The notes: a model not told the origin generated them from the letters alone. DNA of 64,000 bases from Dimorphilus gyrociliatus (GCA_904063045.1 CAJFCJ010000034.1:62001-126000); one strand, 5' to 3'. Numbered from the stretch's first letter, positions 1 to 61,025 are shown. Program-made: numbers and translations.

Positions 1-228
1 GAGGAAAGCTCGAAAAGACTCTGTGAAGATTTGGTATTTTTAAATTCATACACAACATTATCAATTATAATCTTGGAGATAGTATATCTCTTTTGAAAGA
101 AATACATAATAATGTAATATATTGTATAGTGTATATTATATATGTTAGCATTTTACTATGAAACTAGACGTCAGATTATACCTAAAGCGAAGATTTATAC
201 ACTAATGGATTAAGATAGAACGAGACTG

Positions 229-8900: not shown

Positions 8901-11900
8901 CGGAGCCGACGAACACAACTGTAGAAAGCGTAAGATTTTAACAAATTTGTAAAATTTTAACTACCCTTTACATTCATAATTAATCGATTGATAGCTTTTA
9001 CGGATCGCATATCAGCTCGTGTTGACAGTAAATCCTACTGTAAATATGGGAAGCAAATACGATTACATGAATTTTGTGATAAAAAATACGATTGCGCAGA
9101 TAAAACTGATGAAACGAAAGATGAATGTTCAAGTTGAAATAGTTTTTTTTAATGAAATGAACGATTATTACAACATTAATTATTTTTATTTATTTAAATT
9201 AGAACCTTGGTCAAACAGGTTTCTTGATAGAAAAGGAGGTGTTCACTGCTCAGATTTGTATACACTAAAATTTCCTTCCTCAGCTATGTACACGACTTCC
9301 TACAGTATTCTTATTAAATAGTATTTTTGTTTAATGCACTAACAAACAAATTTTGAAATCGATCAGAATTTTTGGAATATCTTATTTATAATATCAGACA
9401 CAAAAGATCTTATTCTAGTATCTTTTCTTATTAATTTTAATAATATTTCTATTTCAAAATTGCTTACAGTTTCAAAAACCAAATTTCTGATTAGAACTGA
9501 AATCATTACAACTGAATGCTCTCTAACATATTATCCATCAGAAATTATTAACACAAAAACACATCCGCCTTATAATGAAATTTCTAATTGCGATGAAACA
9601 ACAAATTGTTTCCCAGGAAGTTATCGATGTAAAACATATCACTATTGCATACAGAATATTCATATTTGCGACGGTATTAATCATTGCCTCCTCGGTGATG
9701 ATGAAGAAAATTGTGGTAAAGTAAATATTTATAATAATTATCAGATACACAATTTTCGAATCAGATCAAAGGAACGTTTCTGGTCTATATAAATGTCATA
9801 ATACGGAAATATACATTCTTACTCAATACGTGTGTGAAAGTGAAACAAAGTATACAAACTGTAAATCATTTTGTGGGACTTTACAATCAAGGAAAGAATT
9901 CTGTAAACAAAATCAAAAAGATTATATGTCAAAATGTATAGACTCCATGATAAAAATTTGTACAGAGACATCACTTTTGTGCGGTAGTCTCGACTGTCCT
10001 GAAGGAGATGACGAAGACGAATATACCTGTTTTAAAAATGTAATTTGTCCGAAAGGCTGTACGTGTCCATCTTCTGTTTATATTTCATGTACAGAACCTT
10101 TTCAAGAAGTCGGATTTTTTAATTTCACATTCAAAGAATTACTGATTGAAAACGTTGATTACGAAGATTATTTAACTTATTTTACTTATCAAAATCATTT
10201 TCAGCACATTATCATTAAAATTTCTATTAAAAGTGCAAATTTTAACCAAATTAACCTTTTGAATAATTGTAAAAATTTGAAATATTTGATTTTGTATAAT
10301 AATTCAATTGTTGAATTGATCGATAATCAATTTCAATATCTTCAAAATCTTATTTACCTTGATTTAAGTAGAAACAAAATCACAAATATTGGAAAAACGG
10401 CGTTTCAGGCACTCGATCATCTTCTATTCCTCGATCTATCACACGTTGTTTTAACACAACTAATCACATCAACATTCATCAACCAAGCGCAAGTTGAAAC
10501 CATGATTTTACAATACTCAATCATACATGATGTTAACGATATATTCAAAGGAATGACAAATTTAAGGAACCTATCGTTAAGAGGAACGTCATTAAACGGA
10601 AATGATAGAATTCCAATAGATATGTTTTCAAACACCAATTTGAAATACTTGAAAAGCGACTATTTCTTTTATTGTTGTTTTGCTAAAAAATATCAAGATC
10701 TGGAAGAATGTTTTCCCCAACAAACTTCATTCAATTCTTGCGATAATCTCTTATCTTCGATCGGATTACGAAGTAAGTCGTTTGAATAGTTCAATCTCTT
10801 ACATTTCCCTACCATTTAGGGAGTAGTTTGCGAATGATAAATATTTGTATATTTTGCAGTTTTTCTATACATAATGCTGTTTTTCGGATTGTTTGGCAAT
10901 ATATCGACCTTTCTTCATTCTATAAAATCTTTCAAACGACCTTCAAATTTATTTCAAATTCAACTAGTTTTATCAAATCTGTTAATGGCTTTATATGTAT
11001 TAATCATTGTTGTTCAAGATTTGAGATATTCCGGAAAATACATCGAATACGATAGAAACTGGAGACGGAGTTTTCTTTGCAATTTAAGTGGAACATTGTG
11101 TTCAACATCCTCAATCCTTTCTCTTTGTAGCATTCTCTTTCTAACATTTGAGAAATATTACGTCATCGTCTTCGGTTTAGGTTCTAAATATTTTAATCTA
11201 TTACGAACAGTTTGTATGGTTTCTATGGCAATATTTTTTTCAATATTGTGTTCAATTTTACCTATATATCTATTTAAGGTGTGTTTTACATTAACATATC
11301 GTGTTTTTGACACTTTATTCACATTATTTTAAATATGTTTTGGTATAAAAGAACTATTATGGAAGATATTCATTGTGCTTTTCTCTTCATCTAACAAATG
11401 AAAAGTCTAATGGATGGATTTATACATTTTGTCTATTTTCTGTTCTGCCGTTACCATTATTATTTGTTAATATTTATTTTTATGCAATTACAATAAGAGT
11501 CATTAATAGATCGAGTAAAGTATTGACAAATAAGCAGATGATGGCAAGATTTTTTCAAATATTGACAACAGTTGCTATAGCTCTTATTCCATATTTTACT
11601 ACGTGGACACCATTTTTTATTTTAGGTTTATGGAGTATTTACGTTGATTAGATTGTTTAAATTGAAATGTTTCTTTTATAATTCTTAAAGGATTTCTAGC
11701 CTTATTAGATAAAAGTTCATTAACAAATGACAATTACAAGTTTATTTTTCTACCATTTATATCGATAAACCTGTTCACTTATCCAATAGTCTACTTTTTT
11801 ATTAATCTTAAAAGGAAAGTGACAAATAGTAGAAAAGATCGCTTCGAATATTACGATAAATTAGCTGTTGAACATTTAAATAATTGTAAGTGTTCTTCTA

Positions 11901-12368
11901 CTAATCTAAATTGTTTAGATTGTAAAACAAAAATCTATATAGGTATGGAACTATTTAGAATTAACTCAAACAACGTTGTATTTTCAAGTATTGAAAAAGT
12001 GATTCAATCTAGAAATATTTCTTATTTAACAAAAGACGATATGAAATACTTGAAAGATTTAAAATTTATATCAATTCAATTAATGATTAGTTTAAATTAT
12101 CTTCATTCAAAATATATTCAATTGAAGAATATTTATCCTCAACAAATATATATTAACGTGTGTATATTTATAAATAGATTGAAACGTATTCTATTATTGT
12201 TCACTATTCAATTTTTAGACTAAACTCTCTAAATATAGAAAAGTATTTCTTTTGGTAGAAAGTGAAAATTTATTATTAGAATTTGAAGAAGAACATCAAT
12301 ACGAAAATATTTATGAATTTGGTAAAATTCTACAAAAATTTTTGAATTACGTATTGAAAAATCTTTAG
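5993..12368 (+). CDS. G2: multi-exon GRL101-like receptor (SRCR-like, CTLD, ~6-7 LDLa, LRR, 7TM, pseudokinase-like tail)
   Basis: ATG 5993 ([14 protein letters not shown]). SRCR-like 7314-7630 ([11 protein letters not shown]...[13 protein letters not shown]). CTLD from 7690 (SCYY...[24 protein letters not shown]). LDLa exons 8470-10030. LRR in 9830-10789. TM with FEKY and WTP. Tail [13 protein letters not shown]...[10 protein letters not shown], stop TAG 12366-12368. Confidence 0.85.
9978..11449. repeat. Near-identical block shared by G2 and G4 (copy 1)
   Basis: Matches 22413-23883 (offset 12435, then 12434). It covers the LRR, TM1-5 and two introns. Confidence 0.95.
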
Positions 12369-24804: not shown

Positions 24805-25513
24805 GATTAAATATAGATAATTACTTAATCTGATTTATTTATTTTAACATTTAAGAGTAAGGGTATTAGACAAAACGTTGACAATTTTAACGCTTTATCT
24901 GAACCCTAATCAAACAGCGATTAAATAGTTTATATTTGACGAGATCTATATTGAAGATCGGCTCTTCTATGACCAAAAAAATAACAGCTTTACTGTTTGT
25001 AAATATATCAAACGGGCTACTGTATTCTTTAAAACATCAACGCCAAAAGTACGTGATCGCTTGATTGCATAACTAACTGTATGACACGTAGCTAGGCGAA
25101 ACATTTAACAAGATATAACTTTTATACAGTCTTCAGCCTCTTTTTAACTAACAGTAGTGTTTAGTAGCAGTTCTATAGAAGTTAAAAAATAACAGATGAA
25201 TCATTATATATTAACTATTATATATGAGAATAGGTGTACCTCTACTTCCATTTTCTAGTTTAAATTCATGTCGAGGCACGACATACATACGATTGTACGT
25301 ATGAATTTACAGGTTTCAACAGCTATAATCATATGTCTTCTATTACTCATTTGAAAATCAAATTTTACTTCGTTATTTCTCAGTAGTCCTTAAGGATCTT
25401 CTAGTAAGTACTTTAGCCTGATTCATATATCTTAAATAGTTTAGATTGTAAAAATTTATCTTTCATTTAAGACATTAAACTCTCTATGATAATTATTTAT
25501 AGTAATTTCAAAA

Positions 25514-28500
25514 ATGGAAAATAAATTGGTAAAAAATCCGTTAGTTATCTTCTTAAAAGATAAAATTGAAGAGATTTATTTGTCATATAAAGATCTTTTG
25601 TTACGTATATTGTCCAATTGTGATAATGAATTGAATATTGAAGAAGATAAGGATAATTTTGAAAAATTATTTAATAATTACATTTCTTATTTATCGATTG
25701 AAGATTTTAATAAAATTTATGAAAATCTTAAACAAGTAACTCCTTTCGATGTTGAAAATGATATCAATAAGTTTAATAATAAAGTTATAGATGAGATTAA
25801 GAATGAGCTTAAAAACAATATTAAACTATCGAACAAAACTACTCCTATTCAACTTTTCTCCTATCAAAGTAAAATCTGTTTATCTAATGAATTTGAATTT
25901 CTTGACAATGTTAAAATGAACGATGAAAGAATTCTTATTCGAGGTGAAGCTGGAATCGGTAAAACATATCAATTCAAGAATATTTTATACTCTTGGGCTA
26001 CGAATAATATCCTACATGATCGAATATTGTTTGGAATTCAATTAAACGAAATTCAAAGACAGACAAGCCTATTTGACGAAATTTTCTATCAAAATGTTCA
26101 ACATGAAACATGGTTAACAAAAGAATTTTTTGAATCTTATTTCTCTATACAAATCAATAAATCTCCCGCTCAAGTTATTTTACTTCTTGACGGAGTAGAT
26201 CAAATCAAATATGAAAATAGGCATTTCAATTTTATAAGCGAATTACGTCAGCTAAACTTTCCTATAATTGTTTGGTGTAGAAAATGGAAAGCTCAATTAA
26301 TAGATAAAACTTATAATAAAATCTATAAAATTCTTGGTTTTGATGAAAATAATCTTAGAATCTATTTAAAAAAACTCTTCAGAGAAACAGACATATTTCC
26401 CGAATATACGGCAAATATTTCGAATATTGTAGTAAAGAAATCCAAGAAAACTAGACGTATATCATATATGTTTGAGAGTGATATACTTATAGAATTTCTA
26501 CGCAGTCACAGTAGCGAACTGTTAAAAGCTTCCCGCCATCCAATTATTGCGTATATGATTGCCGCTATGTGGAGAAAAAATGAATTAGAGATATCTAGTA
26601 CGAAAGATTCAATCTATCAGGATTTCATAATGTTTCTATTGAAAAAAAATGACGTAAAGTCTTTAGATCATCAAGACATATTAAAGAATATCTCTACTTT
26701 TGCTTTTTCCAATTTCTTGTATGATGAACAAATTTTGGTAAAAAAAACTGATAAAACTGATACAAGTTATTATGATAACATACTTTATCCTTATAAAACC
26801 CATGCGGATGATAGTACAGAGTTGAAATTTGTTAATAATATCTTTAAAGAATATTTTGTAGCTTATTACATCATACAAAATATAAATACAAATGTTATAA
26901 ATGAGATTAACTTAAGATCGAAAAATTCAATAGCTGTTGATTTAAGGAATGTTTTAAAGTTTATTATTCAAATGGACAGTTATACTTTTTCCATATTGAT
27001 TAAAAAGTGTTCCAATATTTTAGATTTTTCGGAAATAGATGAAAAAATTACTAAAAATATTCAATGTACTACATCAAAAACCATTGCTATTTGCCTAAGA
27101 TATACATCATTATCAACAACGGCCTTCAAATTTCTAATTAATTACTGTAATTTAATAAATATAATCAATTTTAATTTTGTTCGTATTGATTTTATTGAAT
27201 TTTTTAACCATATGGCAACAAATATGAATAATTTAACCGAAATAACAATAAAAGGTGGTGTTGAGAAATATATTCCTATACAACAACTGGTGAAAATTAC
27301 AGAGAATTTTCGAAAATTAAAAACTTTAAGCATATCCACTATTTTCTTCAACAGTACAGAAAATAATCGCATAACCATTCAATCAGATTTATTGGAAAGT
27401 TTAACTCTATCTCATTGTGATCTTGGTCAATTTTTCAACCAGAAGAAAATACTATTGAAATGCGAAAGTTTAAAATCCTTAGACCTTTCACACAATGGCA
27501 TTACAAGTAGGTTTTTGTTTTGTATTTTTTTATCCAATCATAGTATATCTCTCTTTTCTTTACTCAAACCTCTAATCTATGCATTGAATGTACTTTTTCC
27601 TTAAGATATGGGATTACACTATTTATTAAATATGCTCAATTTGTCAACATTTCCGGAAAGTGGCCATGGAGCTTCAAAAAATATGAATTATATGACAAAC
27701 CTTAGAGTTCTACATTTGTCAAATAGTCCTCTCGAAAATTGTAATCTTCAAAGTTGTATTGGAGATGCGTTTTATTATCTTCATTTCTTGAATAAATTAG
27801 AAATGAATAATTGTAGTGAAATTCTCATTTCAAACACTATGGCTGAATTTGTAGAGCAATCTATTCATTTGGAAACCTTGTCGTTACTTGGAAACTTCTT
27901 AGAAGAAGTGGAGGATTTGAGATTTTGTGAATCTATCTTACTTTCTAAATCATTAAAATATCTAAAATTACCAACTATTCAATTTCCCAGCAAAACTTAC
28001 CTTACACCAATTAAAATTGAAACGGGAAAGTACCATTTAAATTTAATATCATTGAGCGCATCTGATATTGATTTGAATCAATCTATTGCATTAATATTTA
28101 TATCAAGAATTATAACAAATTCGCAAAAATTAAAGATTTTAGAGCTCAATAGCTGTAAGTTAAGTGATAGTATTTTGAAAGTTTTAAACAATCAAAAAGC
28201 TGTAAGAAATTTAAGAGAAATTGCTTTGTCTAATACAGAATATGATAATAATATATTGCTTGAAGAAGATATACTTAAAATCTTATCAGGTTTGGAGATA
28301 TCAGAAACAGAAGACATTGAGCTGACCTGTGTAAAATGTTACTTATCGAATAGTTTATTTGCACAAATACCAAACAATTTAAAATTTTCGTACATGAATT
28401 TATCTTTGAACGATTTGAGAAATATCTCAATGAAAGATATTCAATTCATTTCTGCTTCAAATTTAAGAGAGCTTCATTTATACGATTCAAATCTCGATTC

Positions 28501-31500
28501 AAATCATTTGGCAATGATAACACAGTCAAGTTGTGAATTTAAGAACCTTGTACGGCTTAATCTGTCCAAGAATAGATTTTCTGGAGAGGAGGTTATTAAT
28601 TTTATGAAAAACTTGTCAAATTTCAACGGATTAGTTGAACTATATATGTATGAATGTTCAATAGAAATCAATTATTTTCTACGAATAGCATCCGTTATTC
28701 ACAAAACAAAGCAATTACAGATTTTCAATTCTCTTTGTTTGCCGTGTAATGAAATGAAATTGAAATCTTCTGAATTGCAGATTCAATTGAATTCTAAAAG
28801 CTTTAATCTCGGATTAATAAAAGAATTAATGGACGAATATCATGATATAATGACTTTTCAATCATACATTTGCAGAGAGCCAGTAACTCTGTCTCTTGAA
28901 TGTAAACTTGAATTATTGAAAAAATGCGGAATTCAATTGAGAAGTATTGATATTGATGATTATTTATGGAGGGTAGAAAAAGAAAAGCAATTCCTTTCAA
29001 TGTTAAAACATCAAACCAAACTGAATGAGATAACAATAAAAATATCGCACTGTAGCAATTTCGTAGCCAATAGAAAATTTATAACTAATATTAAAGCAAT
29101 GCTCAGCCATTTTGCAGAGCTAAAAACCATTACTTGTATTAAATTCAATAGAATAGTACAACGCTTTCATGAGAAAATGTTAAAGGAAAAAATTTCGAGT
29201 TCGAATCAAGACTATCAGAGTCTTTTAAAAAGTGTAATGGAAGAGAAGATCTCTAAAGATCATTTGGCATTCTCAAAAGATGCTGGCAAATCAATTCTCG
29301 ATATTATTAATTCTAATAGAAATCTTCAATATCTTAGTATTGAAAATAATTATTTTCCATATAGTCTGGTGAAAAATATAATTTATACTATAGGGGAAAA
29401 ATGTCAAAAGTTAACTGCTTTGAGATTTTCGTTCATAGATATAGAGAAATATGAAAGAGAACAGTTAAGTACGAACTTTAAAACTGAGATGGAAGAACAA
29501 CGCAACTGTAAAATATTATCTAAGAACAAATTAGAAGAATTCTATTTTCATGAAAAGGATCTTGGATCTAGTATTGGTCTATCATTATTTGATGATATGC
29601 AGCAAAATTCTTATAATCTTAAAAGGCTATCCTTACCAAATTGCGGGAATACCAGCAATATTGAAAACGTTGTTTGTGATATAATTAAATCAAACAAAAA
29701 TTTGCAGTCGTTAAATTTTAATAACAACAAATTCACATCAAAAATTGGAAAATTAATATTTGATGAACTTCAGAGAAATTGTTCATCGCTTACCGCCATT
29801 GACTTTTCAAATTGTTCATTAGATTTTACAATTGCGAAAGGAATAAGTCAAACAATCGAAAGAAATCAACAATTAAATACGATTTGTGTTAGTAATAATA
29901 AACTGACACCGGAAGTTGGTATAGCGCTTTGCAAAAGTATTATGAAAAATTGTTCGAATATTGTTGTACTAGATCTTTCCGATTGCGATTTTGACGAAAC
30001 AATTACTGATGTTTTGGGAAAAGCTATTGGAGCAAATTCACACCTAACACAACTCTTTATTGAGAAAAACAAACTTGGATCAAAAGTTTCAAAGTCAATA
30101 TTTGAAAATATTAAGGAAAACTGCTCTAAATTAAATATACTAAATACTTCTTATTGCAATATTGACGAAAGTATTGATAAGTCTATTAAAGAAGCTATTG
30201 AAAATAATCCATATTTAACTGAGCTCTATTTGCAAGGGAATAAATTTGGATCAAAAGTTGGAATATCAATATTAAAAGCAGCTAGAAATAAATTATCCAG
30301 GTTAAATATCCTTAATCTTTCTAATTGTCAAATTAATGTACAGATAAAGAATGATCTTTGGAAAACGATTAGATCAAATCCTAATCTTCAACAAATCTAC
30401 TTGAACGAAAACAGTTTTGGATCTGACATCATTAATTCTATTACTGATGTTATTAAAGACAAAAATCAAATGACACTAACGGTACTTGCTCTCTCAGATT
30501 GTAAAATTAATGAAGAGGTGCAAAAAAAGATTGCATATGCGCTTCGTTTTATGCCTAAACTTGAAAAGTTACTTTTGAATCTCAACAATCTTGGTTCAGT
30601 CGTTGGGCCAACTATTTTCGAAACTATAAAAAATCATTTTACCTCCTTAATAACTATTAACTTTAGCAATTGTCGGTTTGATCAGAGCACTGGAGCACTT
30701 TTGGGTGAAGCAATTGGTAAAAATGTCAATTTACGCGAAATTTATTTAAGAAATAATCCTTTGGGATCAATTGTTGGATCATCTATTTTTAAGAATATTA
30801 AAAACAATTGTCAAAATTTGAATATTATTGATTTCTTTAATTGTAAATTTGATGGAGATACTCAATGTATTGGAGATGCAATAGCAAGAAATGTATATTT
30901 ACAAGAGCTTAATTTAGGTGAAAATAATCTAGGAGTCGAAATTAGAAAATACATTTTGCATACTATCAAAGCTGCTGGTATTTACCTATCAACCCTTAAT
31001 TTAAGCTCGTCTATTGAGAATGTTCGTTCTGATGATGATAATTTACCCAAGAATTTTTGGTCAAATATATCATTGTCAGTCGACTCTTCTCCCTCTTGTA
31101 AGGAAATTTGTTAAAGTTTGATCAGATTATATTAAAAACCACTATCTTCAGGTATAAATAAGAAAACTTTGAAATGTACCTACAAGCCAACTCGCCCATA
31201 TATTGAAAAGAGTCATTCTTCCGAACCACAACCTGAAATACAGCAAACAAAACCTCTCGACTTGGAAAATATCGCGAAATTTACTGAAGGTAATTTATTA
31301 CATCTTCAATAAAACCTTTCAAAAACATATTAACTTTTTAGCAGGTAATTCTTTGAATTTATATTGTAATTGTCTTCAAAATGCAATACCTATTCATAAA
31401 TCTACGAGTCAAGCTAACTTCGATACTGAATATTCATTTCCCAAATTTGAAAATGATTTACACGAAAATTGCCTAAGAAAGTCAATATTAGATAATTACA

Positions 31501-34260
31501 TTCGTCGATCAAAAGTAGTTTGGCAGCATCAATCATTTCAAATTTACATTTGGTTAAAAACAAATGACGAATACATCAACTTAGAATGTGGCTTACGAAT
31601 TTATTTACGAAAATGTATATTACACAAAGATTTATTATTGAAAATCAACATTTCTGAAGAGAAAATATCATTTGAGGGAAAAATTGATAATGACGATTGT
31701 ATTGGTTGGTTAACTGTACCAGTTCAAAATTATCCTTTAGATTTCGTACAGAAAAATAATGACTATGCCATTTCAAAACAATTTATGCGTATAGAAATTT
31801 CATGGAAAACAATTTCTAAAGACTTTCCATTAGGCATAGTCGAAAGGAAAAATGCCACATTGTTTATTTGTATTCAAGCCCAAAGGATTTGCCATGATGA
31901 TATTTGTTGCTTAGTGACTATTAGAGATAATTCTACGGAATTAAATAATTTGAAAAATCTAGTGTATCTTAAAGAGATTGAAATGAAGAATTGCGTTGAA
32001 GATAGTTTACATTTATACATAAATAGCCATCATGAAATGAAAGTCATTAATATCAATTTACTGAGCCGAGGTTACATATTTGGAGAGCATTTCTTTGTAA
32101 ACCGAAAAGATATTCACATTAATCTCACTTCAAATAACAAAAACATTTTAAAAGATCAATTTCCTTTGATGGAGAGACTGGAAAGTGAAAACTGCAGATT
32201 TTCAATCAAGTATTACATTGGTAAAAAACTAACATTAAAAATTCATAATGCAAAATTGGTCCTCACTGAGAATGGTTTGGACAAACCAACAGTTTTATCA
32301 ATACAAAGTAAATGTTCGTATGAAATTGACAAGTCATCAGGCACAATTAGATTTCAAAACTTTGTGGACTGTCGACCAACAGGACTTTGCTTTTTTCAAC
32401 CTGTCGATTTATACATCAAACCGCTGTTGGTTTATAAAAATGGCGCTGAAATCTCAACTAACAATGTTTCTAAAAACGCAATTTTTCACAAGGCTTCAGG
32501 ATTTGCCTGCCTAAAAATCACAGGCTTTAGTGATCATGGTCTACTTGAAAATTGGGAAAAGGACAAAATGCTTTACATTCACTATTTCATTTCCATTCAA
32601 AATATGAACAGAGGTTCAAGATTAAACATTTATTATAGTCTAAACGAACCACTCGGCGTAGTAAGACAAATTAAATAAAAGCAATATCTTTTAAACGTTT
32701 TTCTAATGAAATTAATTGAAACATCAGACAGGCACCGCCAAGAATGTACAGCATTCTAATTCAACGTTGAAGTTACACTTCCGTGAGCAGTTTAAACATT
32801 TAAAACAATATGGAATTCAAATTACCTTAACATCAGAACCACACAAAAGTTGTCATAAGAGTTTTTATCAAATTTTCAGCAATTACACATCTGGTAATAT
32901 TTCTATTCAAACAAGCAAATAAACTAACCTTTTCAACATTTGTCACTGCTCCATTCAAAGGTGAAACGGCCTCGATAACTTTACCGTTGGACATGTCAAT
33001 GGAAAATTTGCAGTCCGACATTCAGTTCCAAGTAAAGCCAGATATTAGAAATTACAACGGTCTGTTTGAAGAATTCATCTCATACAAAGAAGCAATTGCA
33101 GAAAATCTCACGCAACAGCAATTAGATGAAAACTTTCAGAAATTTTTCTGCAAATTCGGTAAAAAAATTGATCTTCAGTAATGTTTTCAATTCCTTTTAC
33201 AATTCTTCTTTTCTTTCTGTTTAGAAAGAAATGTCTTCCTTTCCTCAGCAATGCAACACTGCGAGATTACTAGCCAGCATGACATCAGACGTGGCTTGAG
33301 CGATGGCGTAGGCTTTTTGCTAATTTTATAGAAATTAACCGTAACATAGCTAACAGCAACATCATCTTTCTGACAGAACATTTACGATACAACATCAAGA
33401 AACCAGGTCGTTGTAATAATCATTGACGATGGGAACGGAGCAAGATCGGAAAACGACTGGATAAATCTGAAAATAATCTTCGCAAACCTAAAACATGAAA
33501 TAGTACTGTGGAGAAATATTGACAGAGACGAATGTGAAAGGAAAATTCGATCACTGAAAACGAATCTTTCAACGTCGAATGAAAATGAGATGAACGTTCA
33601 ATCTCTAATATTCTTTATTTTAGCCGACGGAAACAACAACTTGTTTTTCCTAAGCAACAATTCCACGTTCGAATTTAATGAATTTATAAATTACGTCGAC
33701 AGCGACTTTCACCAATTCCAGGGAAAACCAAAGCTATTTTTCTTTCAAGTTCACAATCAACGTAAGATTTCTTTCATCTTTTCTTTTATTTCAAAATAAT
33801 AACACACTTTTCGAAAAGTAGAAAACTCCGAGAGGGATCAATCATTCGTTGATCAAAGAGTTGCAATCAAACCCATCCCTTGCGATGACCACGTTGCCTG
33901 CCCACGGAACGTCACAAATAGATATGTATCACACGCAGCCAGAGATATCTTCTCGGTTCTTTGTACTCTTAAAGGTAAGCCAAGCGAACGGCAGTAACAT
34001 CCTGTAATAAATGATTTGATGCATTGTTTCCTACAGACTCTCCATCACCCGCAAATAACTACGGCAGTAAATTCATTAGATCGTTTGTTCTCGCTATGGA
34101 ATTTATTGGTAAAAATCAACCTCTCGACAAAGTTGTATACTTCATGTCCGAGTATTTGAGGCATTTTGGGGAAAGCAACCATCTGCCTTTAAGAGTTCAT
34201 TCCGACGAGTTTTCTAGAAAATATTATTTCTTTCGAAATGAAAATTGTATAAACTTATAA
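25514..34260 (+). CDS. NLR1: NACHT-LRR protein with C-terminal ZU5/UPA-like (FIIND-like) region and catalytically dead caspase-fold domain; multi-exon
   Basis: Walker A GEAGIGKT and Walker B LLLDGVDQ in 25514-27604. RI-like LRRs in 27608-31098. In-frame GT-AG splices traced by hand from ~31099 through the 31345-32660 exon to the caspase exons. ZU5-like VDCRPTGLCFFQPVDLYI...ITGFSDHG. Caspase-like VVVIIIDDG...IFFILADG...GKPKLFFFQVHN...RDIFSVLCTLKG...GSKFIRSF...FSRKYYF. The simplest stop is 34260; extra low-complexity exons to ~34730 are possible. Confidence 0.8.
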
Positions 34261-34834
34261 ACAATACACGCTGCCAATCATCACAAAGCACAGCTCGTTC
34301 TCTTCATCCTAGCCCCGTGCACAGTGAAGATACGCTGAGACTAAATTCGTCGGCTGTGAAACCGGCCAACAAAACGTCATCGCGCCCATCAAATTATAAA
34401 AGTCACCTTGACAAGAGTCAACAAAAACAATTTACCATATATGGATTACTTTAATCAGCTTTCACCGCTGTACCACATCTAGTCTATTATTACTTTCCAC
34501 TTGCTCTAGTTTCAAACCAGCTCGGTTTATCCACAACAGGGAGCTTATACGGCTCACCATTGCCCTACACCCCTGCACTAGGCCCAGCACTGCAGATTTA
34601 CCTTGCTTTCTATTGACAGAGACAACATTGCGCAGACAATTTCATTTCATAGATGTTGGTGTGACACAGCAAATTCACTTAAATCCGTACCCAACTAACA
34701 GCCGGATTGTTCACAATCAATCCGATTAATTTCTATAATTAACCAACATTCGTAGATTAAGCTAAAGCGGTAATTCGCTATTTAAGGAATAGTTGCCATG
34801 AATTTTCGTTATTACTTCAAAAAGCATCGAGAGA

Positions 34835-35273
34835 ATGAGCTCGACTTGCGCAATAGTACTTTCTCTAGTTCTCTCTTTGTGCTTGTTCAGCAGTACGCAT
34901 TCCAACAGTTCAAACATACGAAGAATAATCAACTCGGTTAGTTCAAGGAAAAGTGATGAAATGGCGAAAATTCAACGTTATTTGAATGAAAAAGTAAGTC
35001 GCTACTATAAAGATTGTATTTCTGTCAAAACTCAGTATCTCCACTTTTACAAAACAGAGACGGGACAATCATAGTCTCAACGGTTTTTGGATAAAATGCT
35101 ATAATGACAAACTATGGATCAAAAACTCCAGTTGCTTTGTGCTGGGTTCTACGATATTTCAAATTTCCGGCATTGGTCCGTCGGATTTTACCGAAATTTG
35201 CCAACAAAATAATTATTTGAACTGCAAAGAAATTAATGAATTTGCTACGGTTTATTCAAAAACAGTCACGTGA
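34835..35273 (+). CDS. Small secreted prepro-peptide-like protein (2 exons, 124 aa)
   Basis: Signal peptide MSSTCAIVLSLVLSLCLFSSTHS. Exon 1 ends at 34993 (gtaagt), acceptor aaacag at 35057. Splicing creates NEK-RR followed by a 69-aa segment with 4 Cys. Stop 35271-35273. Confidence 0.65.
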
Positions 35274-35357
35274 CTCATACATTTACAAGATATCAAATAT
35301 GGCCGATTTCTTAATAAGCATCCTAGTTTCTATAGACAACTACAACAGTTGTTTAAG

Positions 35358-35967
35358 TTATAAAAGCCTTTGAAATACAAATGCCATCAATGTCAAAAAC
35401 GGAACAACGCCAAGTCTGCAGCCTGCACAAGGTTTATCATACAAAAGCTCCTTGGCCAAGTCGTTGAAAGCGCCACATTTCTTAACGGCACCTAATTCGC
35501 AGCAGTATCGCTTCGTGCTGTCCTCCTTAATTTTTTCATTACACTTTTTCAACTCGTCTCTACAGCCTAACGAAGTAGAAATTTCAATCAATCTCTAATA
35601 GAACAAGGAAACGAAACCAACAAAGTCAACTAACCTGTTTCGCAAAACTTGGTCGTATAGCTCAAAGCCTCTTTCCTCTTTTCAGCCGAGCAAGAAGGAG
35701 TCTCATCTTTAAAGCACTTTTCTACTTCAGTTACAATTGGACAAATCTTTTCCATATCGTATTGATCTGTAGCGATAATATCCAATATCTCATTCCTCTT
35801 TTCTTTGGCACAGTCTACACCTTCGTCGTAACATTTGTCAGCAAGCGCATTTGGAAGAGCCGACACTTTTCAATAAAATCAATCTGAAGCTGTTATGTTT
35901 TGCAGTGTATTTTCGCTTCAAACTTACCCACACAAAGTAGTCCAAACAAGAAGTACATCGCTTCCAT
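35358..35967 (-). CDS. Small Cys-rich secreted protein with probable GPI-anchor signal (3 exons), copy 1
   Basis: MEAMYFLFGLLCV/VSALPNALADKC signal peptide, Cys-rich core, and hydrophobic C-terminus LGVVPFLTLMAFVFQRLL*. Canonical GT-AG introns. Confidence 0.75.
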
Positions 35968-36043
35968 TCTGATGAGTGAATATTCGAAAACATCTCGATT
36001 TGCCCGTTTTATACGGTTGGTAAATAGTATGGTTTTGAATGTG

Positions 36044-36053
36044 GGGAAATTCC
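36044..36053 (+). promoter_or_regulatory. Candidate NF-kB/Rel site GGGAAATTCC
   Basis: Exact match to the GGGRNNYYCC consensus, ~77 bp upstream of the ATG of the GPI-type gene. Confidence 0.5.
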
Positions 36054-36120
36054 AATTTCGGGAAAGCTATTTGCAGGTGGCGCTAAGTTCCTTTTTAGGA
36101 AAGTCAACAAAGGTAATGTG

Positions 36121-36130
36121 GGGAAATTCC
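36121..36130 (+). promoter_or_regulatory. Second candidate NF-kB/Rel site GGGAAATTCC, created by the 77-bp duplication
   Basis: Same motif in the second tandem unit. Confidence 0.5.
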
Positions 36131-36287
36131 AATTTCGGGAAAGCTATTTGCAGGTGGCGCTAAGTTCCTTTTTAGGAAAGTCAACAAAGGTTTTATTTAT
36201 TCACCAGCAGTGTGAATATTCGTTTCATTTATTCAGTAATACTCAAGATAACATGTGTAATTTATGAAAAATAGTGTCCACTACGGC

Positions 36288-37860
36288 TCAATTGCGGCAG
36301 TTTTTCAAGCAACAGTCGTTAACGTTGTTTGGTGAACTGCTGGTAGAGTTTGCTGACGATTGGGCTACAATTGCGAATGGGTCGATTATCTCCAGGTCTT
36401 CTCCATTGTCTTTGAAATCAAAGTAGCCCGAGTAACGTGACGCCTTCAACGCCTCGCTGACCAAACCGGAAATTGGCACAATTTCATTTCTCTACTTGTT
36501 GAAAAATGAGTTTATTTTTGGAATGTTTAATTTTATTGATAGATAAAATAACCTTGAAAATGTTTGAGTAGTCAAACTTGAAAGCTTCTTCGTAATCCTC
36601 TATTCCTCCTTTGTACACGGTATAGCAAGTGTGCGGCGTCGCCTTCTCTCTTCCCACTTTGAAAAGTCTGTAGGTTGCAGACACGAATTTCGCGTCACCT
36701 AGTCGTTTCAAAAATAATCATTACTTGTCAACACCGCTATTTTAGGGGCTTACTCACCAACAACTCTCTGCAACTCCTTATTCTTCAGGTCAATGACACT
36801 GGCGTTAACTAAAAGTGGAGTGCTGAATCCCACCCTTGTCGCTATATCAATTAGGTCACGCCAATACAGTGCGCCCGCAAAACACTCGCCTAAACAGCAA
36901 TTCAATCAGTCAAATGCCTATTACTCTCTTTAATAAACGCATTTACAAACCCCATAAAGTTTTATGCTTTAGAATATCACCCGACAAACGACGATCCGCA
37001 TAGACATCGCTAAAATACAACTCGCCTCCTTCCTGAAAATCATTTTTGCACTCAATTAACGCCGTGTAAACATTTTAAAGTGATTGTTACTTTTAGAACT
37101 TTGTAGGCCTGCCATAGAACGGCTTGTTTGTCCGGCGACAGGTTCAACACGCAATTTGATCTGAATAAGTAAGCAACTTCATAGTTATTGCAGCCAAAGT
37201 CTTATTTCAACTTTCGAAAGAGTAACGCTTACACAATGACGTCATATGAATTTTCCTCAATTCCGGCATCAGTCAATTTCTCTATAAATCCTCGTTTAAA
37301 TTCTACATTTGGTTTAGAATAGCCAAATTGTCTCGTATGATAATCTATGTTTTCATCCGCCACGTCCAGCTAATCAACAAACATTGTGTATTTTAACTGA
37401 CCAACTAATCGGGATACAGCTTACTATACTGTATCTTATCTATTAGTACAATTGCTTATCTATCTAAACAACTACTAGTCAACATATTAGGGGTCAAGGT
37501 TGTAGTAATGTGAACAAATTGGGAACAAAATTGCAATGGGAAAGCTACCTGCTCTTGTGTCATATCCAAACCAGTAACAAACCCATTTGGTCCCACCAAC
37601 TTACTCAGACAAAAGCAGTCCCTACCAGCTCCACATCCCAAATCTAGAACTGAACAACCTTCAAGTGCAGGCGGTATGACTATACCACAACCGTAGTATT
37701 TTTCGTGAACCGCTCCTGCCACCTGGCTTAGAGCCTTCTTCACAGATTTTGTCATCACTTCTCCTTGTCCTGTTGTGCAGGCGGTTGTTTGCAGATCGTC
37801 GCTTTTCTGCAATACGTTTCCGTAGTAGTCTTTGACGTTTTCATAAATTTCCTCCGACAT
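36288..37860 (-). CDS. AS3MT: Arsenite methyltransferase, copy A (multi-exon)
   Basis: MSEEIYENVKDYYGNVLQKSDDLQTTAC, YYGCG, SAM motif VLDLGCGAGRD, SNCVLNLSPDK, GECFAGALYW, SATYRLFK, and a C-terminal CC. All four Cys equivalent to human C32/C61/C156/C206 are present. Confidence 0.95.
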
Positions 37861-38820
37861 TTTTTCTTCTCTTCTTTTGCCTCGACGAAAATTTCGACAA
37901 ATTTTCAAATATTTCCAATTTCTGCTTTCCAGTCTATAGACTAAAGCCAAACTATAAAATTCAACAGCAAAACAGCTGCCTTAAATACTTGTAGAAAATC
38001 TAGTTATTGCCGATTTAGGCCTAAGTGAGTTGCGATAAAACGCGATAAAATACTATTATTAGCTTTCTCATTTTTCCCATTAGCTTTTAACCGAATTCTC
38101 ATTTCTTTTTGTCCCATTCAAGTTCTGCTTTCTCAATTTTTTCACAAATCAATTTCAATATTTAGAATAGCGATTATCTAGACAAGTTCAATTCGACCTC
38201 TGCTACGTATTTCGCAGGAAACGACCCTTCAATGTTTCAACCATTCGGTGACAAAGCAAAAATAAATGCCAACGCTTACGTTAATATTAATGCGGCCAGT
38301 AGAATCTTTTTGAATATACAATAGGCAAAATGCTGATATCTTATCCCGTTTCTTGAATTGTTCATTCATGCGATACCCTTTTTGATGTTCTGTCTAATGG
38401 AATATTGTGGCATTTTTTTAAGATTTTCGAGTGCATTGGGGATAAACTAAAAGTAGTTAATTTTTTTATTTGTTCAGGTGAATATTTAATTGTCCTTTCT
38501 TTAGAATGTTTATATTTAAATGCTTCAAAACAATTCTTAGACGATATAGGTCACTGCCTAATCTCAACCACTACTGGGAAGGTACTACTACTCTGTAATT
38601 CTCAGTTTTTTTTATAATGTTAACATATGAATATGATTTTAAATTAAGTTAATTTTATTATTTATGGTTTTCTATTCAGAAACTATTCACAGATGAAGAA
38701 ATTAATACGATATAACAAAGGTAACCATAGGAATATGAATATTTATTATAATATAGACTCTATATATTTGCATCTTACATTCTTAGAACATCAAAGTGTG
38801 TTTTTCCAAATGAAAGAAAA

Positions 38821-51575: not shown

Positions 51576-53840
51576 TCAGTAATATAGTTCACAAACATGA
51601 TAAGATAAATCCTTTATACGATCGTTCATATTGCAGCTGTTTAGTTTTAAAACCTTTAATTTAGTATTTAAACTTTTTAACAAAGTAATAAGACTGTTCA
51701 GTGCTTCTGGGCCGAAATCATTAAAACCTAAATCAAAGTTTTCCAAGTATTTAAAATTTATCATTTTTTTGCTTAATGCATCGACAGCCTTCGGTGTGAT
51801 AAAGCACTTGGCCAAGTTGAAATTTTTCAGGTAAACTGTTGATTCCTTTAGCGATTGACAGAATAGGTTTATTCCTTTTTCACCTAATTCATTATTTTCT
51901 AAATACAACTCCTCTAATTTGTTATTTGTAGCGAAATATTCACCAAGATATAATCCTCCTGTTTCCCTTAAACAGCTGTCTTTCAAATTGAGTATCTTTA
52001 ATTTTTTAGCAAATAAATGCTCCAAAATATATTTAAGCCCTGTATCCTCAATTTTATTCCATCCCAAGTATAATTCCTCCAAATCCTTTAGAAAGTGAAG
52101 CGATTTAGACAATTCAATAGAACCTTTAACTCCAAAATGACAACTGGAAATATTTAGAATTTTTAACCTATGGTTAGTCATTCTTAAAGAGAAGGCTAAC
52201 GACTTAATTCCGCTATCTTCAATCTTGTTTCGATTAATTTGTAGCTCTTCGAGGAAAATTGTTTTAAGTAACGCTTGAGATAAAAGTTTTGCTCCTTCAT
52301 CAGAGAAACCGCAATTGGTCAATTTTAAGATCATTAATTTAGTCTTATCAATGTAAAAATAGTCATGAAAAAATTGTAATCCAGTGTCTCCAATATCGTT
52401 CCAGCTAAGATCAATTTCATTAAGATATCTTAGATAGTTTAGTGCTTTTGACAAGTTTAACATTCCTTTAGAAGAAATATTGCATTTCCATAACTTAAGA
52501 CTTTTCAAATGATAATGATTTTTATTAATTGACGATGAAATTAAATTTAGGCCATAGTCTTCTATTTTATTCCATGAAAAGTCCAACATATTTAGACTAT
52601 TTAGTTCGACAAAACTCTCTACAAAATACTGCACTCCAAATTTCTCTATTTGACTAGAGCATATTTTGAAAATCTTTAATGTTGATCTGACGTCTAAAAG
52701 TGCTGGAGAAACCTTTTTCATACCTACTACACCTATGTTATTCCAACCTAAATTAAGCTCTTCTAGATGTGAAAAATGCTTAAGTATATCCTTAAAAGCA
52801 TCCATTGCTGCCTCTTCAAGAGCACAATCAGAAAAGTTTAAAACTCGAATAATATACGGTGATATAGAAAGGGAAGATGAAAGGTTTGTTAAACCACTAT
52901 TACCAAGTTCAATTTGACTGAGATCCAGACTTTCGAAATAAATAATTTCTAATAGAGTTTCTGCTAATTGATTGTAAGTAAAATCGGGATTATAATCAAC
53001 TTTCTTCGCCAAAATTCCATTTAGAACTGGGAAGAAATCCTTGTTTAACAGTTTCTCTTCAATTCTTATTAAGATAAGAACGACTAACGCAATCAGTGGA
53101 ATTGAACTTAGTCGAAGTGTTTTTGGTCGTTGCTTTTCTAAGAATTCTACAATAGAATAAGCTGCAGTTTCACTTACTAAACAAGTGTAGAGTTGACAAA
53201 TTTGACGTTTTTCCAATCCTTCAATTTGAACAATAACATCACAAAGAATATCAAGCTTTTGAAATTGTATTTCTCTACTCCAAATAAACATTGGAATATC
53301 TAATTTATTACTAAAAATAAGATTTTTAAAGTAGCTACTGCTAGAATAATCGAATCCATCGAATAGTAGAAATGTCTTAAATTCTTTACTTCTAAGAAGG
53401 AAATGCTTTATTGTTTCTTTTGGTATTCTATCGTATTCGTGGAAATTCTGATGTAAAATTACATCAAAAATATCTTGATTTTGTTTAGCATCTTTCAAAT
53501 CGACTAATAGAAAAAGGACATTAACTGGAGAGAAGTTTCTTTCATTATTAGCCCAAATTGAGAGTAATTTTTTGATTTGAAAAGATTTTCCAATTCCTCT
53601 TACACCTTTTATCAAAACTTTTTTAAAATCTTTTCCACATAGATCAAATAGAAAGGAAAATTCAACATTTGTTTCCTGTTTGTCATTGTTTGTCGTTACT
53701 AGATTCTTAATTATTCGATATTTTGGTAGAATATTTATATTTTCAGGTGAGAATATTAATTTTTCATTATGTAATGATAGATTTACTTGCCTAGGATGTC
53801 CCGAATGATATTTTTTCACTAAATTAACTAATTTATCCAT
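51576..53840 (-). CDS. NLR2: single-exon NACHT-LRR protein (754 aa) with no evident effector domain
   Basis: Walker A GVRGIGKS, Walker B LLFDGFD and IPL motif, followed by RI-like LRRs (LNLGWNNIG, LDLSWNDIG, LYLENNELG). Confidence 0.9.
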   Translation of the reverse strand: MDKLVNLVKKYHSGHPRQVNLSLHNEKLIFSPENINILPKYRIIKNLVTTNNDKQETNVEFSFLFDLCGKDFKKVLIKGVRGIGKSFQIKKLLSIWANNERNFSPVNVLFLLVDLKDAKQNQDIFDVILHQNFHEYDRIPKETIKHFLLRSKEFKTFLLFDGFDYSSSSYFKNLIFSNKLDIPMFIWSREIQFQKLDILCDVIVQIEGLEKRQICQLYTCLVSETAAYSIVEFLEKQRPKTLRLSSIPLIALVVLILIRIEEKLLNKDFFPVLNGILAKKVDYNPDFTYNQLAETLLEIIYFESLDLSQIELGNSGLTNLSSSLSISPYIIRVLNFSDCALEEAAMDAFKDILKHFSHLEELNLGWNNIGVVGMKKVSPALLDVRSTLKIFKICSSQIEKFGVQYFVESFVELNSLNMLDFSWNKIEDYGLNLISSSINKNHYHLKSLKLWKCNISSKGMLNLSKALNYLRYLNEIDLSWNDIGDTGLQFFHDYFYIDKTKLMILKLTNCGFSDEGAKLLSQALLKTIFLEELQINRNKIEDSGIKSLAFSLRMTNHRLKILNISSCHFGVKGSIELSKSLHFLKDLEELYLGWNKIEDTGLKYILEHLFAKKLKILNLKDSCLRETGGLYLGEYFATNNKLEELYLENNELGEKGINLFCQSLKESTVYLKNFNLAKCFITPKAVDALSKKMINFKYLENFDLGFNDFGPEALNSLITLLKSLNTKLKVLKLNSCNMNDRIKDLSYHVCELYY

Positions 53841-55918: not shown

Positions 55919-56323
55919 TTGAAGGTCAAAACACAGATTTCAGAAGAAATAGAAGAAAATTTAATTATCTTTTTATGATCATAACATCAATTAAAAATAT
56001 GGAATGAATTATCATGGCCCTAAACGTCGGTAAGACAGACGGTAGGTATGCTTTCCAAAGAGACGAGCGCTCAAGTGTTGAATTGCTACTATAAAAATAA
56101 ACCGATTAATCATATATCAAAAAAAATTGGACGTTTAACTATTGATATGAAAGAGTAATTGTACTAATTCCCTTATGTTTGTTCCTATACTTCTCAAACG
56201 TATTTGCAGTAGGATATTTTATAAAATAATCGTTATCAGTATTCTATATAAATGTAGTTGATGGTAATAATGCTTACATAGCGGACTCCGTACCAGAAAT
56301 TACAGATCAAGGCATGACCTCTT

Positions 56324-56860
56324 TTGAAAAAAGAGCCAGGTACCATCCCTTTGTATATAAAAAAATATTTTATAATATCTGGAACTTATTCCCTACCCAG
56401 ACTCATGCCAACACCCAGTGCTATCCCCATATATGATGTCACATCAGACATTTCATACGAAACCGCCGTATATGCCATAAATGATAGCTATTATAATCTT
56501 CTAGCGTCCACCTCCCATATTATTTTCCTCTCGCTGAACATCAATCCCTCGAGTAGAATTGACAACAGCGTTACAAGCCGCAAATTTTATTGAACCCTAC
56601 AATAATATTTTCCCTAACACTCATATTAGAGTATTTATCGATAGTAAAATCGTCTTCAGCTATCTGGATAATAGGAAACTAAAACTATCAAATCATATAC
56701 GTCATGTAGTGAAATCACTAATGGCCACGGAATCAAAGTCTATATAAGATCCGAAAACATATCCGTTGCAAATGGGATCAAAAGGGTGTTGAAGAGATGC
56801 AAATTATGCCTTGCGAAGAACTAAACAAGAACAGTCCTGCGAATGGCTAATCTACCAAAC
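56324..56860 (+). mobile_element. Degraded BEL/Pao LTR-retrotransposon pol fragment (RNase H and integrase Zn-finger remnants)
   Basis: DVTSDISYETAVYA resembles HxFxDASxxAYxAxVY. After a frameshift come TSIPRVELTTALQAA (TIPRLEL motif) and RVFIDSKIVFSYL (WTDSxIVLxWI). Then IKRVLKRCKLC...MANLP (integrase CxxC...MxxLP). Stops and frameshifts are present and no LTRs were found. Confidence 0.75.
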
Positions 56861-57109
56861 TGGTGTACTGGGGAATTTGTCAGTCCACAGACGCCATCGA
56901 CTTATATCTATAAGAGATGGCAAGATTACTTTCAGATAATTAAAAGACGAACTCCAAAGAGATTTATTGTTAACAATCAGTGCAAATGATCAATTCTACT
57001 AAGGGGAAATTGAATATGTACCCCTAGTACATTGAGTAGTTGGCATAATCATATACGTTAATCATTCTATAGTTTTCCCTTAGCTAGGTTAGAACCACAA
57101 TGTTCCATT

Positions 57110-58559
57110 TCACTCTTCATAAGCAATGGAAAAAGGATTCGTCTTTTCCAAAGTATGCTCGTATTTTTCAATTCGAAAGTATTTTGCATATCTGGTTGTT
57201 GAAAAAATTAAAGACAGTTCTTTGGACACTAGGTGTCTTTGATTCGTCTGAATATTTGAATAGACGTTGTATTAATTGCATATTTGATTAATCAATCAAC
57301 TAACCTTGAAGTTGTTGTAGATATCAAACTTGAAATTATGTTCGTGTCCTTCAATATTACCACAATAAGTTACTAGCATTTTAGGGACGTTGTGTTTAGG
57401 TAGTTTGAAAAGTCTATAGGTTGCGGAAATGAATTTAGCATTGCCTGGAAGGAGATTTCAACGAGAGTGTAAACTTCAATCTGTTTCTATTCAGTATTTG
57501 AAATACTTTCAACTGACCGACTCGTGTTTGAATGTGCTTGTCTATCAAGCATATGGGACTCGCTTTATACAAAATTGGAGTAGTAAAGCCTATTCTCTTT
57601 GCCATTTCTAAAAGATCTTGCCAGTGTAAAGCGCCTGCTATACCTTCACCTAACAAGACATTTACAAGGCTAAAGGCTGAGTATGCTGAGAATATTAGAG
57701 TGCCGATGGAAAATGCTTACCCCAGAGGATGCTATCGTTTTTTATTTCGGCCGAAAGTTTCGAGTCCGTATACATGTCACTAAAATACAACTCTCCACCT
57801 TCCTGTGTATAGTATATTAACTCTGATTAGCTGTTACCTTGAAGTAGTCGTGTTAACTGTTCAAGTTGATCATGGTATCATTGCTAACCATGATTAGTTT
57901 ACCTTTAGAGCCGTAAAGGCTTGTGATAAAACAGCCTCTTTGTCTGGTGAAAGGTTTATCACGCAATTTGAGCTGATGGTTTGATAAATGAAAATATAAG
58001 TGACAACTAGAGAGTACAGTGTAGATGGACTGCTTACACAATGACATCGTAAGACTCTCGCTCTATTCCGGCTTTGTCTAATTGCTCGATAAATCCACTT
58101 TTGAATTCGACATTGGGCTTAGAATATCCGAATGTCTTTGTATGGCAGTCCACATTCTTCTTTGCAATATCCAACTGTGGATGTGTTTTTAGGGTTTTCA
58201 TTAATTTGTATTCAGTAGTCTGTTGATTTAAATCAAAAAAAGTGTATTACCAGTTCGGGAGTCATATCTATACCAGTAACACGTCCATTTGGACCAACCA
58301 ACTTGCTGAGACAAAAGCAATCTCTGCCAGCGCCGCAACCCAAATCTAGTACTGAACATCCCTCTAGCGCTGGCGGAAGAGTAATACCACAACCAAAGTA
58401 TCTTGAGTTGACTTCTTCGTTGATCAAAGAGAGTGCTTCCTTGACAGATTTTGTTAACGCATGTTTATCTGCCGTGCAAGCAGACGTTTTCAAATCACGG
58501 CTGCTTTCAATAACTTTTCCATAATAATCCTTAACATTATCCAAAATCCTTTTTGTCAT
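57110..58559 (-). CDS. AS3MT: Arsenite methyltransferase paralog B (divergent; Cys206-equivalent replaced by Gly; no C-terminal CC)
   Basis: MTKRILDNVKDYYGKV...LKTSAC, YFGCG, VLDLGCGAGRD, SNCVINLSPDK, GEGIAGALHW, SATYRLFK. Last exon ends NPFSIAYEE* at 57110. Confidence 0.9.
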
Positions 58560-60766: not shown

Positions 60767-60939
60767 GCCGTAGTGGACACTATTTTTCATAAATTACACA
60801 TGTTATCTTGAGTATTACTGAATAAATGAAACGAATATTCACACTGCTGGTGAATAAATAAAACCTTTGTTGACTTTCCTAAAAAGGAACTTAGCGCCAC
60901 CTGCTCGTTTTAAAAAATGCAAATAGCTTTCCCGAAATT

Positions 60940-60949: not shown

Positions 60950-61025
60950 CACATTCAAAACCATACTATTTACCAACCGTATAAAACGGGCAAATCGATA
61001 TGTTTTCGAATATTCACTCATCAGA

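Follow-up and report, generated by a model that had tools for sequence, protein, structure and literature searches.

An expressed NACHT-LRR gene of Dimorphilus gyrociliatus with a candidate autoproteolytic ZU5 module and a caspase fold that lacks its catalytic residues

The window analysed here is a 64,000-nucleotide (nt) stretch of the Dimorphilus gyrociliatus genome (CAJFCJ010000034.1, 62001-126000), and gene coordinates are given as positions within it. Between 25514 and 34260 on the plus strand it encodes an NLR in which a NACHT domain and leucine-rich repeats (LRRs) are followed by a ZU5-like/UPA-like/ZU5 module and a caspase fold. Joining ten GT-AG exons gave a single stop-free open reading frame (ORF) of 2,716 amino acids, from the ATG at 25514 to the stop codon at 34258-34260. 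The window is AT-rich, mostly 23-30% G+C, with very short introns, and an open frame of 2,716 codons over ten canonically spliced exons in 27% G+C DNA is not due to chance. A preliminary description of this DNA had proposed one frame from NACHT through LRR and a ZU5-like region into a caspase fold, and this was borne out by the ORF and by the RNA joints described below. Its hand-spliced exons were in the correct frame, but the 138-nt exon at 31152-31289 had been missed and exon 4 was found to start at 31342, not 31345. The exons and the first intron were as follows:

25514-27506, plus strand: exon 1, encoding the start codon, an N-terminal region of ~138 amino acids, NACHT and the first LRRs
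27507-27605, plus strand: intron 1, 99 nt, GTAGGT..AG, phase 1, read from the sequence; it holds the stop codon that splits two long ORFs
27606-31097, plus strand: exon 2, ~1,160 amino acids of ribonuclease-inhibitor-type LRRs; RNA record 1 covers 28500-31097 without mismatch
31152-31289, plus strand: exon 3, 138 nt, a 46-amino acid linker rich in Pro, Glu, Gln, Ser and Lys that leads from the LRRs to the ZU5 module
31342-32660, plus strand: exon 4, three beta-sandwich domains (D1, D2 and D3)
32728-32893, 32961-33158 and 33225-33307, plus strand: exons 5-7, ~150 amino acids between the ZU5 and the caspase fold
33377-33761, 33822-33974 and 34037-34260, plus strand: exons 8-10, a p20+p10 caspase fold ending at the stop codon at 34258-34260

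Sequencing run X1, whose contigs skip introns, is therefore RNA, and it was aligned to 28500-34499. Over this stretch the contigs contained eight GT..AG joints with zero mismatches (31097/31152, 31289/31342, 32660/32728, 32893/32961, 33158/33225, 33307/33377, 33761/33822 and 33974/34037). Record 1 of X1 (6,285 nt, depth 54.8) covers 28500-31097, 31152-31289 and 31342-31834, and reaches 3,056 nt further upstream, to ~25345 if just the 99-nt intron is removed. As the length of this record agrees with such an extension and 0.90 of the sampled words of 25200-28499 were present in X1, the NACHT exon was placed on this NLR-specific contig. The two long ORFs, 25514-27604 and 27608-31114, are in the same frame with one stop codon between them; intron 1, which removes it, lies outside this aligned stretch, preserves the frame and is consistent with the length of record 1. 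Record 2 (3,098 nt, depth 368) covers 31805-32660, then exons 5-9, and then 34037 onward past 34499. The depth per bin equalled exon length multiplied by contig depth, so no X1 contig retained an intron. Both joints of exon 3 are on a single RNA contig, and P0001, the annotated protein, contains this exon too. In exon 4 no in-frame ATG occurs before 31785-31787, and the part of the exon that precedes it is therefore read from the upstream exon. Besides a loose end at 31781 that is considered below, the RNA had two more within the LRR exon, at 30123 and 30704; these belong to low-depth contigs that diverge from the window sequence and are probably paralogous LRR transcripts.

P0001 (1,962 amino acids, window 27839-34613) was rejected as a model of this gene, as its N-terminus and its exon 5 are wrong and its C-terminus is false. 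The model begins with a Met inside the LRR exon, so that the NACHT domain is dropped; exon 5 is replaced by 42 non-exonic residues (part of exon 5 out of frame together with the following intron); and exon 10 is left early, the last 55 residues being translated 3′ untranslated region (UTR).

In the sensor part, Pfam NACHT matched residues 139-291 (about 25928-26386) at 2.5e-13. The Walker A motif (GEAGIGKT, from 25943) and the Walker B motif (LLLDGVD, with its Asp at 26189-26191) are both intact, and LRR_1, LRR_4 and LRR_6 Pfam matches lie C-terminal of NACHT on the same chain. At the level of sequence and feature searches no CARD, PYD or death domain (DD) was found in residues 1-138, which had no Pfam match and a top atlas feature score of 0.50.

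Exon 4 encodes the following domains and site:

about 31500-31844, plus strand: D1, ZU5-like
about 31845-32189, plus strand: D2, UPA-like
about 32190-32558, plus strand: D3, a ZU5 holding the candidate F/S site; exon 4 carries 44 residues past the site
32526-32531, plus strand: candidate site F2270/S2271, local sequence TGF/SDHG, with F2270 at 32526-32528 and S2271 at 32529-32531

The 443-amino acid piece encoded by exon 4 had zero Pfam matches and zero PDB sequence matches. A HMMER scan of 1.8 billion cluster representatives revealed just 13 relatives (23-30% identity), and their alignment has two common blocks, Y.G.E..LK..NA.L.LP and C.P.G..F....L.MKP, along with the consensus I.HFS.HG. Pfam ZU5 was reached by three of 14 family members (best 9.5e-6), and the sole match of the family profile in the PDB was the ZU5 of ZO-1 (E 0.4). 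AlphaFold2 with the family alignment predicted three beta-sandwiches for the exon-4 piece (predicted local distance difference test (pLDDT) 74; predicted template modelling score (pTM) 0.74). The top PDB match of this model in Foldseek was the ZU5-ZU5-UPA-DD tandem of ankyrin-B (E 7.6e-4, probability 1.0), and 21 of the 25 top matches in the Swiss-Prot part of the AlphaFold database were ZU5/UPA proteins (SH3BP4, MACC1, ankyrins, CARD8, UNC5, NLRP1a/b and PIDD1). D3 modelled alone had a pLDDT of 81. Comparison of D3 with 48,161 PDB representatives, with no prefilter, ranked ZU5 first, followed by GAIN and Nup98 autoproteolytic domains; ZU5, GPS/GAIN and Nup98 domains form the published 'ZU5 superfamily' of autopeptidases (PMC3482391). 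As modelled, D3 has a ZU5 fold, and the ZU5 expected from the preliminary description was thus found both by AlphaFold2 and by structural searches. The same description had called the region an NLRP1-like FIIND; the ZU5 does carry an F/S-type site, but the module is not a plain FIIND, as an extra ZU5-like/UPA-like pair precedes this ZU5. Neither Pfam FIIND nor UPA-FIIND matched the window piece (E ≤10) or any family member (E ≤1).

Alignments with hhalign gave no internal repeat signal among D1, D2, D3 and the post-cleavage segment, and none between the exon 5/6 family alignment and D1-D3. Word-index protein searches with the exon-4 piece, the annotated protein P0003 (see below) and P0001 residues 1282-1962 returned nothing, so that no correctly spliced database protein was found for the C-terminal part; atlas feature and shape searches gave weak leads at most.

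The F/S junction at 32528/32529 had been placed exactly, as the codon positions show. Phe is found at this site in 15/15 family sequences and is the sole invariant Phe of the family, followed by Ser in nine and by Cys in six; the 15 aligned sequences are mutually divergent (19-33% identity). A buried Phe that never varies, with Ser and Cys interchangeable right after it, is the pattern expected of an N-O/N-S acyl-shift nucleophile. In the predicted models, both of the exon-4 piece and of D3 alone, F2270/S2271 lies between the last two ZU5 strands. Structural alignments to Nup98 (1ko6_A), GPR56 (5kvm_A) and the rat NLRP1 ZU5 (7crv) all end at model residue 120, which is F2270; the Nup98 alignment terminates at residue 863 and the GPR56 alignment at residue 382. 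We take the GPR56 site to be L382/T383 and 1ko6_A and 5kvm_A to be N-terminal cleavage products, as presumably are the ZU5 chains of rat NLRP1 7crv. The His of the Nup98 HFS is residue 862, hence its Phe is residue 863 (PMC3210808). In the models, then, the F/S pair occupies the place in the fold where known scissile bonds lie, and it is the most conserved feature of the family. The ZU5 module is FIIND-like and probably self-cleaving.

In the model, the 49 residues that follow the site make up four strands, which could be aligned with the beginning of the UPA domains of UNC5b and CARD8. The UPA that had been proposed to follow the cut site was therefore only partly supported, through these first residues. 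Pfam UPA did not match any tested piece, and exons 5-7 were without any Pfam match. Exon 5 is conserved in relatives. Exons 5-7 presumably encode the remainder of a UPA-like domain and a linker, and from the sequence this linker is expected to be helical.

Relatives of the module were found at other loci. A second D. gyrociliatus locus, L001 (CAJFCJ010000036.1, 9974-14100), encodes a stand-alone ZU5-module exon (9974-11188), then an unannotated pseudo-caspase exon (11829-12143) and then a separate true caspase gene. The protein annotated there, P0003 (DgyrCDS14409), which is the closest relative to bear a name, skips the exon at 11829-12143 and appears to be a chimera of the ZU5-pseudo-caspase gene and the next, true caspase gene; its 'ZU5 + active caspase' layout was therefore dropped as evidence. 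The adjacent pseudo-caspase gene and short-prodomain true caspase of L001 may be a functional pair. Loci L002 and L007 are from genomic contigs of SRR23372216, SRR23372229 and SRR23372231 (22-26% G+C, another organism), and their arrangements are the order of ORFs on DNA. In L002, a single ORF joins LRR-like sequence to a ZU5 module, and the caspase exon after it has SHG and ECCRS. In L007 three elements are colinear on one strand: an ORF homologous to NACHT (tblastn 1e-6, P-loop degenerate), a ZU5 module whose site is F-C, and a caspase exon with THG and QPCRK. In a further locus of that other organism, L004, a Death-TIR gene (851 amino acids; 157-2712, minus strand) lies head-to-head with a ZU5-module/pseudo-caspase gene, ~4 kb away.

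Pfam Peptidase_C14 matched the p20 exon alone at 1.3e-4 and P0001 at 3e-7 (hidden Markov model positions 22-191 of 233), with low scores of 22-31 bits. BLAST gave a colinear alignment with the true caspase of P0003 through the p10 region, and a C-terminal KYYFF block is common to the window protein and L002. Asp2547 (33626-33628) is at the position of the catalytic His and His2589 (33752-33754) at that of the catalytic Cys; the Arg after the catalytic Cys is also lost. The window motifs ILADG and QVHNQ aligned with MAHGD/SSHG/LTHG and NCCRG/ECCRS/QPCRK, respectively, and the residues at the two catalytic positions were:

window protein: Asp (ILADG) at the His position, His (QVHNQ) at the Cys position
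L001: Ser at the His position, Tyr at the Cys position
L004: Pro at the His position, Phe at the Cys position
L002: His (SHG) at the His position, Cys (ECCRS) at the Cys position
L007: His (THG) at the His position, Cys (QPCRK) at the Cys position
P0003, caspase part: His (AHG) at the His position, Cys (NCCRG) at the Cys position

By these residues the window domain is a pseudo-caspase and is predicted to be unable to cut. The earlier identification of a pseudo-caspase with a complete p20+p10 fold was thus upheld by the Peptidase_C14 matches and the replacement of both catalytic residues. The idea, put forward with it, that sensor and effector are collapsed into one chain did not survive for this gene, as a fold without the His and Cys cannot be a protease effector and would be at most an adaptor or regulator; such a sensor-effector fusion may hold for the relatives in another organism that keep both. 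As these relatives keep His, Cys and Arg, the ancestral form probably had an active caspase. No Death domain was matched in any tested piece from 31203 on, and the C-terminus of the protein is the caspase fold.

The 3′ part of the gene lies in a 5.4-kb inverted duplicate with two arms:

32993-38402, plus strand: arm 1, with exons 6-10, the 3′ UTR and, on the minus strand, a small Cys-rich gene
58652-64000, minus strand: arm 2, a second copy of the pseudo-caspase exons, from 64000 down to 62736; its 5′ part is beyond the window end

Self-BLAST aligned 32993-36075 with 64000-60918 (99.68% identity) and 36150-38402 with 60904-58652 (99.5%). No difference separates the arms over 32993-35431, a stretch that takes in pseudo-caspase exons 6-10, and their first ten differences, all within the 32993-36075 block, are in 35432-35994, inside the small Cys-rich minus-strand gene. 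A pure assembly artefact was rejected as the origin of the duplicate, because the RNA has a second 5′ flank and because these ten differences cluster in one small gene. This second flank is seen at the loose end at 31781, where the preceding 30-mer is absent from the window and, read in frame, has two TAA codons before the ATG that matches 31785. The loose end was also rejected as an alternative spliced 5′ exon, there being no AG acceptor at 31779-31780. It is a probable duplication breakpoint. The simplest reading is that the second copy is a stand-alone, 5′-truncated gene starting MRIEISW and that record 2 is the collapsed product of both copies, which would account for the break between records 1 and 2 (a 30-nt overlap, 31805-31834) and for part of the ~7x jump in depth, to which 3′ bias may also contribute. 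The NLR messages are spliced via exon 3 into exon 4 and extend 53 nt beyond the breakpoint, and we infer that they continue downstream as the identical sequence dictates. Since L001 and L002 start the module at D1, which is missing from the RNA of the other copy, the NLR-linked copy is the complete one.

Additionally, the window has three further direct duplicates of >99% identity (1894-2611/14181-14898, 9978-11454/22413-23888 and 42827-43812/49396-50381), and the region is crowded with segmental duplications of very recent origin. The window carries tandem LRR-G-protein-coupled receptor (LRR-GPCR) genes, and two of these three duplicates cover LRR-GPCR exons (LRR_8 and 7tm_1; an LDL-receptor class A domain is also present in one). 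The G+C content is 36-39% in both arms of the inverted duplicate (34000-38000 and 56000-64000) compared to 23-30% elsewhere. A second NACHT-LRR ORF of 754 amino acids (51579-53840, minus strand; LRR_6 4.5e-33, NACHT 3.3e-6) is 25% identical to the NACHT studied here. Whole-window tblastn of the ZU5 module and caspase fold found neither near this ORF, with no search made specifically downstream of it.

On balance we favour, with fair confidence, the reading that this is an expressed NLR gene whose ZU5-like/UPA-like/ZU5 module is FIIND-like and would cut itself, followed by a dead caspase fold. Module and dead fold together stand where NLRP1 has its FIIND-CARD and PIDD1 its ZU5-ZU5-UPA-DD. If it behaves as its counterparts in PIDD1, NLRP1 and CARD8 do, the ZU5 would sever its own polypeptide at the F2270/S2271 bond through an N-O acyl shift, after which the 446-residue C-terminal piece, composed of the UPA-like segment and the pseudo-caspase, would stay non-covalently bound and would be freed or clustered upon activation or degradation of the NACHT-LRR part. 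As the caspase fold cannot cut, its role is likely to be protein-protein: it may pair via the caspase dimer interface with a true caspase and activate or block it, as cFLIP does with caspase-8, or it may alternatively be a decoy.

Several observations weigh against this reading. The nearest structural neighbours of D3 include the ZU5 domains of ankyrin and UNC5, which do not cleave, and the residue before the Phe, His in eight of the 15 family sequences, is Gly in the window protein. Of the UPA, only the first 49 residues past the cut site were seen, and its completion in exons 5-7 is presumed. No true caspase lies within the window, and a pairing partner of the pseudo-caspase is purely hypothetical. 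The RNA 3′ of ~31781 is shared with the non-NLR copy and is not assignable to one of the two, and the shared contig has ~7x the depth of the NLR-specific contig (368 vs 54.8), the two overlapping by just 30 nt.

The same architecture could operate with a ZU5 that does not cleave, in which case a rigid supramodule of the ankyrin/UNC5 kind would fix the pseudo-caspase to the LRR, serving autoinhibition or docking, and oligomerisation of NACHT in the intact chain would give the signal. This we regard as unlikely, although it has points in its favour: among known structures D3 is matched best by the ZU5 domains of ankyrin, ZO-1 and UNC5b, none of which cleaves, the window protein lacks the His of HFS, and no Pfam FIIND match was obtained. 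The Gly is no argument against cleavage, since in CARD8 the Phe and Ser are essential and the residue before the Phe is not, and the same is true of that residue in Nup98 (PMC3210808). That 15 divergent sequences all keep this one Phe, and have nothing but Ser or Cys next to it, is hard to understand unless the second residue serves as a nucleophile; in UNC5b the Phe is replaced by Leu (PMC3210808), and the Nup98, GPR56 and rat NLRP1 ZU5 alignments end on F2270.

An improbable alternative is that the working unit is a stand-alone ZU5-pseudo-caspase gene, either the second copy or one that starts at 31785, and that the NLR-fused message is a minor by-product of a recent duplication by which the module came to lie behind an NLR gene. 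The difference in contig depth fits this, as do the other 5′ sequence at 31781 with its in-frame stops before the ATG, the existence of a stand-alone paralogue (L001) and the 99% duplicates that fill the window. It is at odds with the completeness of the NLR-linked copy from D1, the RNA of the other copy starting inside D1, hence a truncated derivative, and with an LRR exon that is spliced precisely and in frame through a dedicated linker exon; moreover, in another organism LRR-like sequence is continuous with a ZU5 module (L002) and a NACHT-homologous ORF precedes one (L007). That the caspase-like part is a decaying, functionless relic of a formerly active NLR-ZU5-caspase on its way to a pseudogene is very improbable, for although His, Cys and the Arg after Cys are all lost and Pfam gives a low score of 22-31 bits, ten intact, canonically spliced and transcribed exons keep the frame open, and at least three pseudo-caspase versions (window, L001 and L004) keep the blocks KSLIFF, G and PK.FFF, which speaks for a retained pseudo-enzyme.

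Returning to the self-cleaving reading, we put forward more tentatively a sensor family that signals without death-fold adaptors, in which the ZU5 cut would free a UPA-caspase-fold fragment that directly seeds caspase dimers, the window gene being a cFLIP-like regulatory member joined to a NACHT-LRR sensor; we hold this to be a doubtful extension at present. If true, inflammasome or PIDDosome logic would have been made adaptor-free by domain fusion, in a lineage whose published survey turned up neither PIDD nor ASC (PMC11463336). If cleavage occurs, the functional-degradation and induced-proximity models would be testable on one polypeptide, and the FIIND principle would have a greater age and modularity than its vertebrate examples imply. 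The recurrent loss of catalysis (window, L001 and L004) points to pseudo-caspase regulators attached to sensors.

cFLIP-L has a full caspase fold without the catalytic Cys and regulates caspase-8 by dimerising with this true caspase. The worm domain resembles it in having a caspase fold that lacks the catalytic Cys, and dimerisation with a true caspase is proposed for the worm domain by analogy; cFLIP, unlike the worm protein, is recruited by death effector domains and is not attached to a sensor or ZU5. In the full-text literature, in which not every journal is covered, no fusion of a ZU5 with an F/S site to a caspase fold was found described, whether or not joined to an NLR. In sponges, ctenophores and cnidarians, NACHT-ZU5 proteins, described as recurrent and of unknown function, likewise have NACHT and ZU5 on one invertebrate chain; no caspase fold after the ZU5 and no conserved F-S/C site is described for them, and CASc occurs only in a figure legend of sponge NLR domains (PMC12909245). 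The ZU5-UPA supramodules of ankyrin and UNC5 do not self-cleave, end in death domains and belong to cytoskeletal or receptor proteins.

The vertebrate self-cleaving proteins offer the closest comparison. NLRP1 (PYD-NACHT-LRR-FIIND-CARD) shares with the worm gene a NACHT, LRRs, a ZU5 with an F/S-type site and a C-terminal signalling domain, probably also a UPA-like continuation of the ZU5, and in both the released piece would be the C-terminal fragment. The worm gene differs in having no PYD or other recognisable N-terminal domain, in the extra ZU5-like/UPA-like pair before the cleavable ZU5, in a whole caspase fold without catalytic residues in place of the CARD and in having no detectable Pfam FIIND similarity. 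CARD8 (FIIND-CARD), whose FIIND is a ZU5-UPA with an SF/S site (PMC3210808), differs from it in having neither NACHT nor LRR and in ending with a CARD. PIDD1 (LRR-ZU5-ZU5-UPA-DD) is alike in that LRRs are followed by several ZU5-superfamily sandwiches with an HFS-type site and in that its pathway ends at a caspase; it has no NACHT, and its death domain recruits caspase-2 via RAIDD, whereas the worm order is ZU5-like, UPA-like, ZU5 and a caspase fold at the end. A published survey found no PIDD, ASC or TRADD in lophotrochozoans (PMC11463336). NLRP1, CARD8 and PIDD1 reach their caspase via a death-fold domain, usually together with an adaptor, whereas this spiralian gene joins a caspase fold directly to the module.

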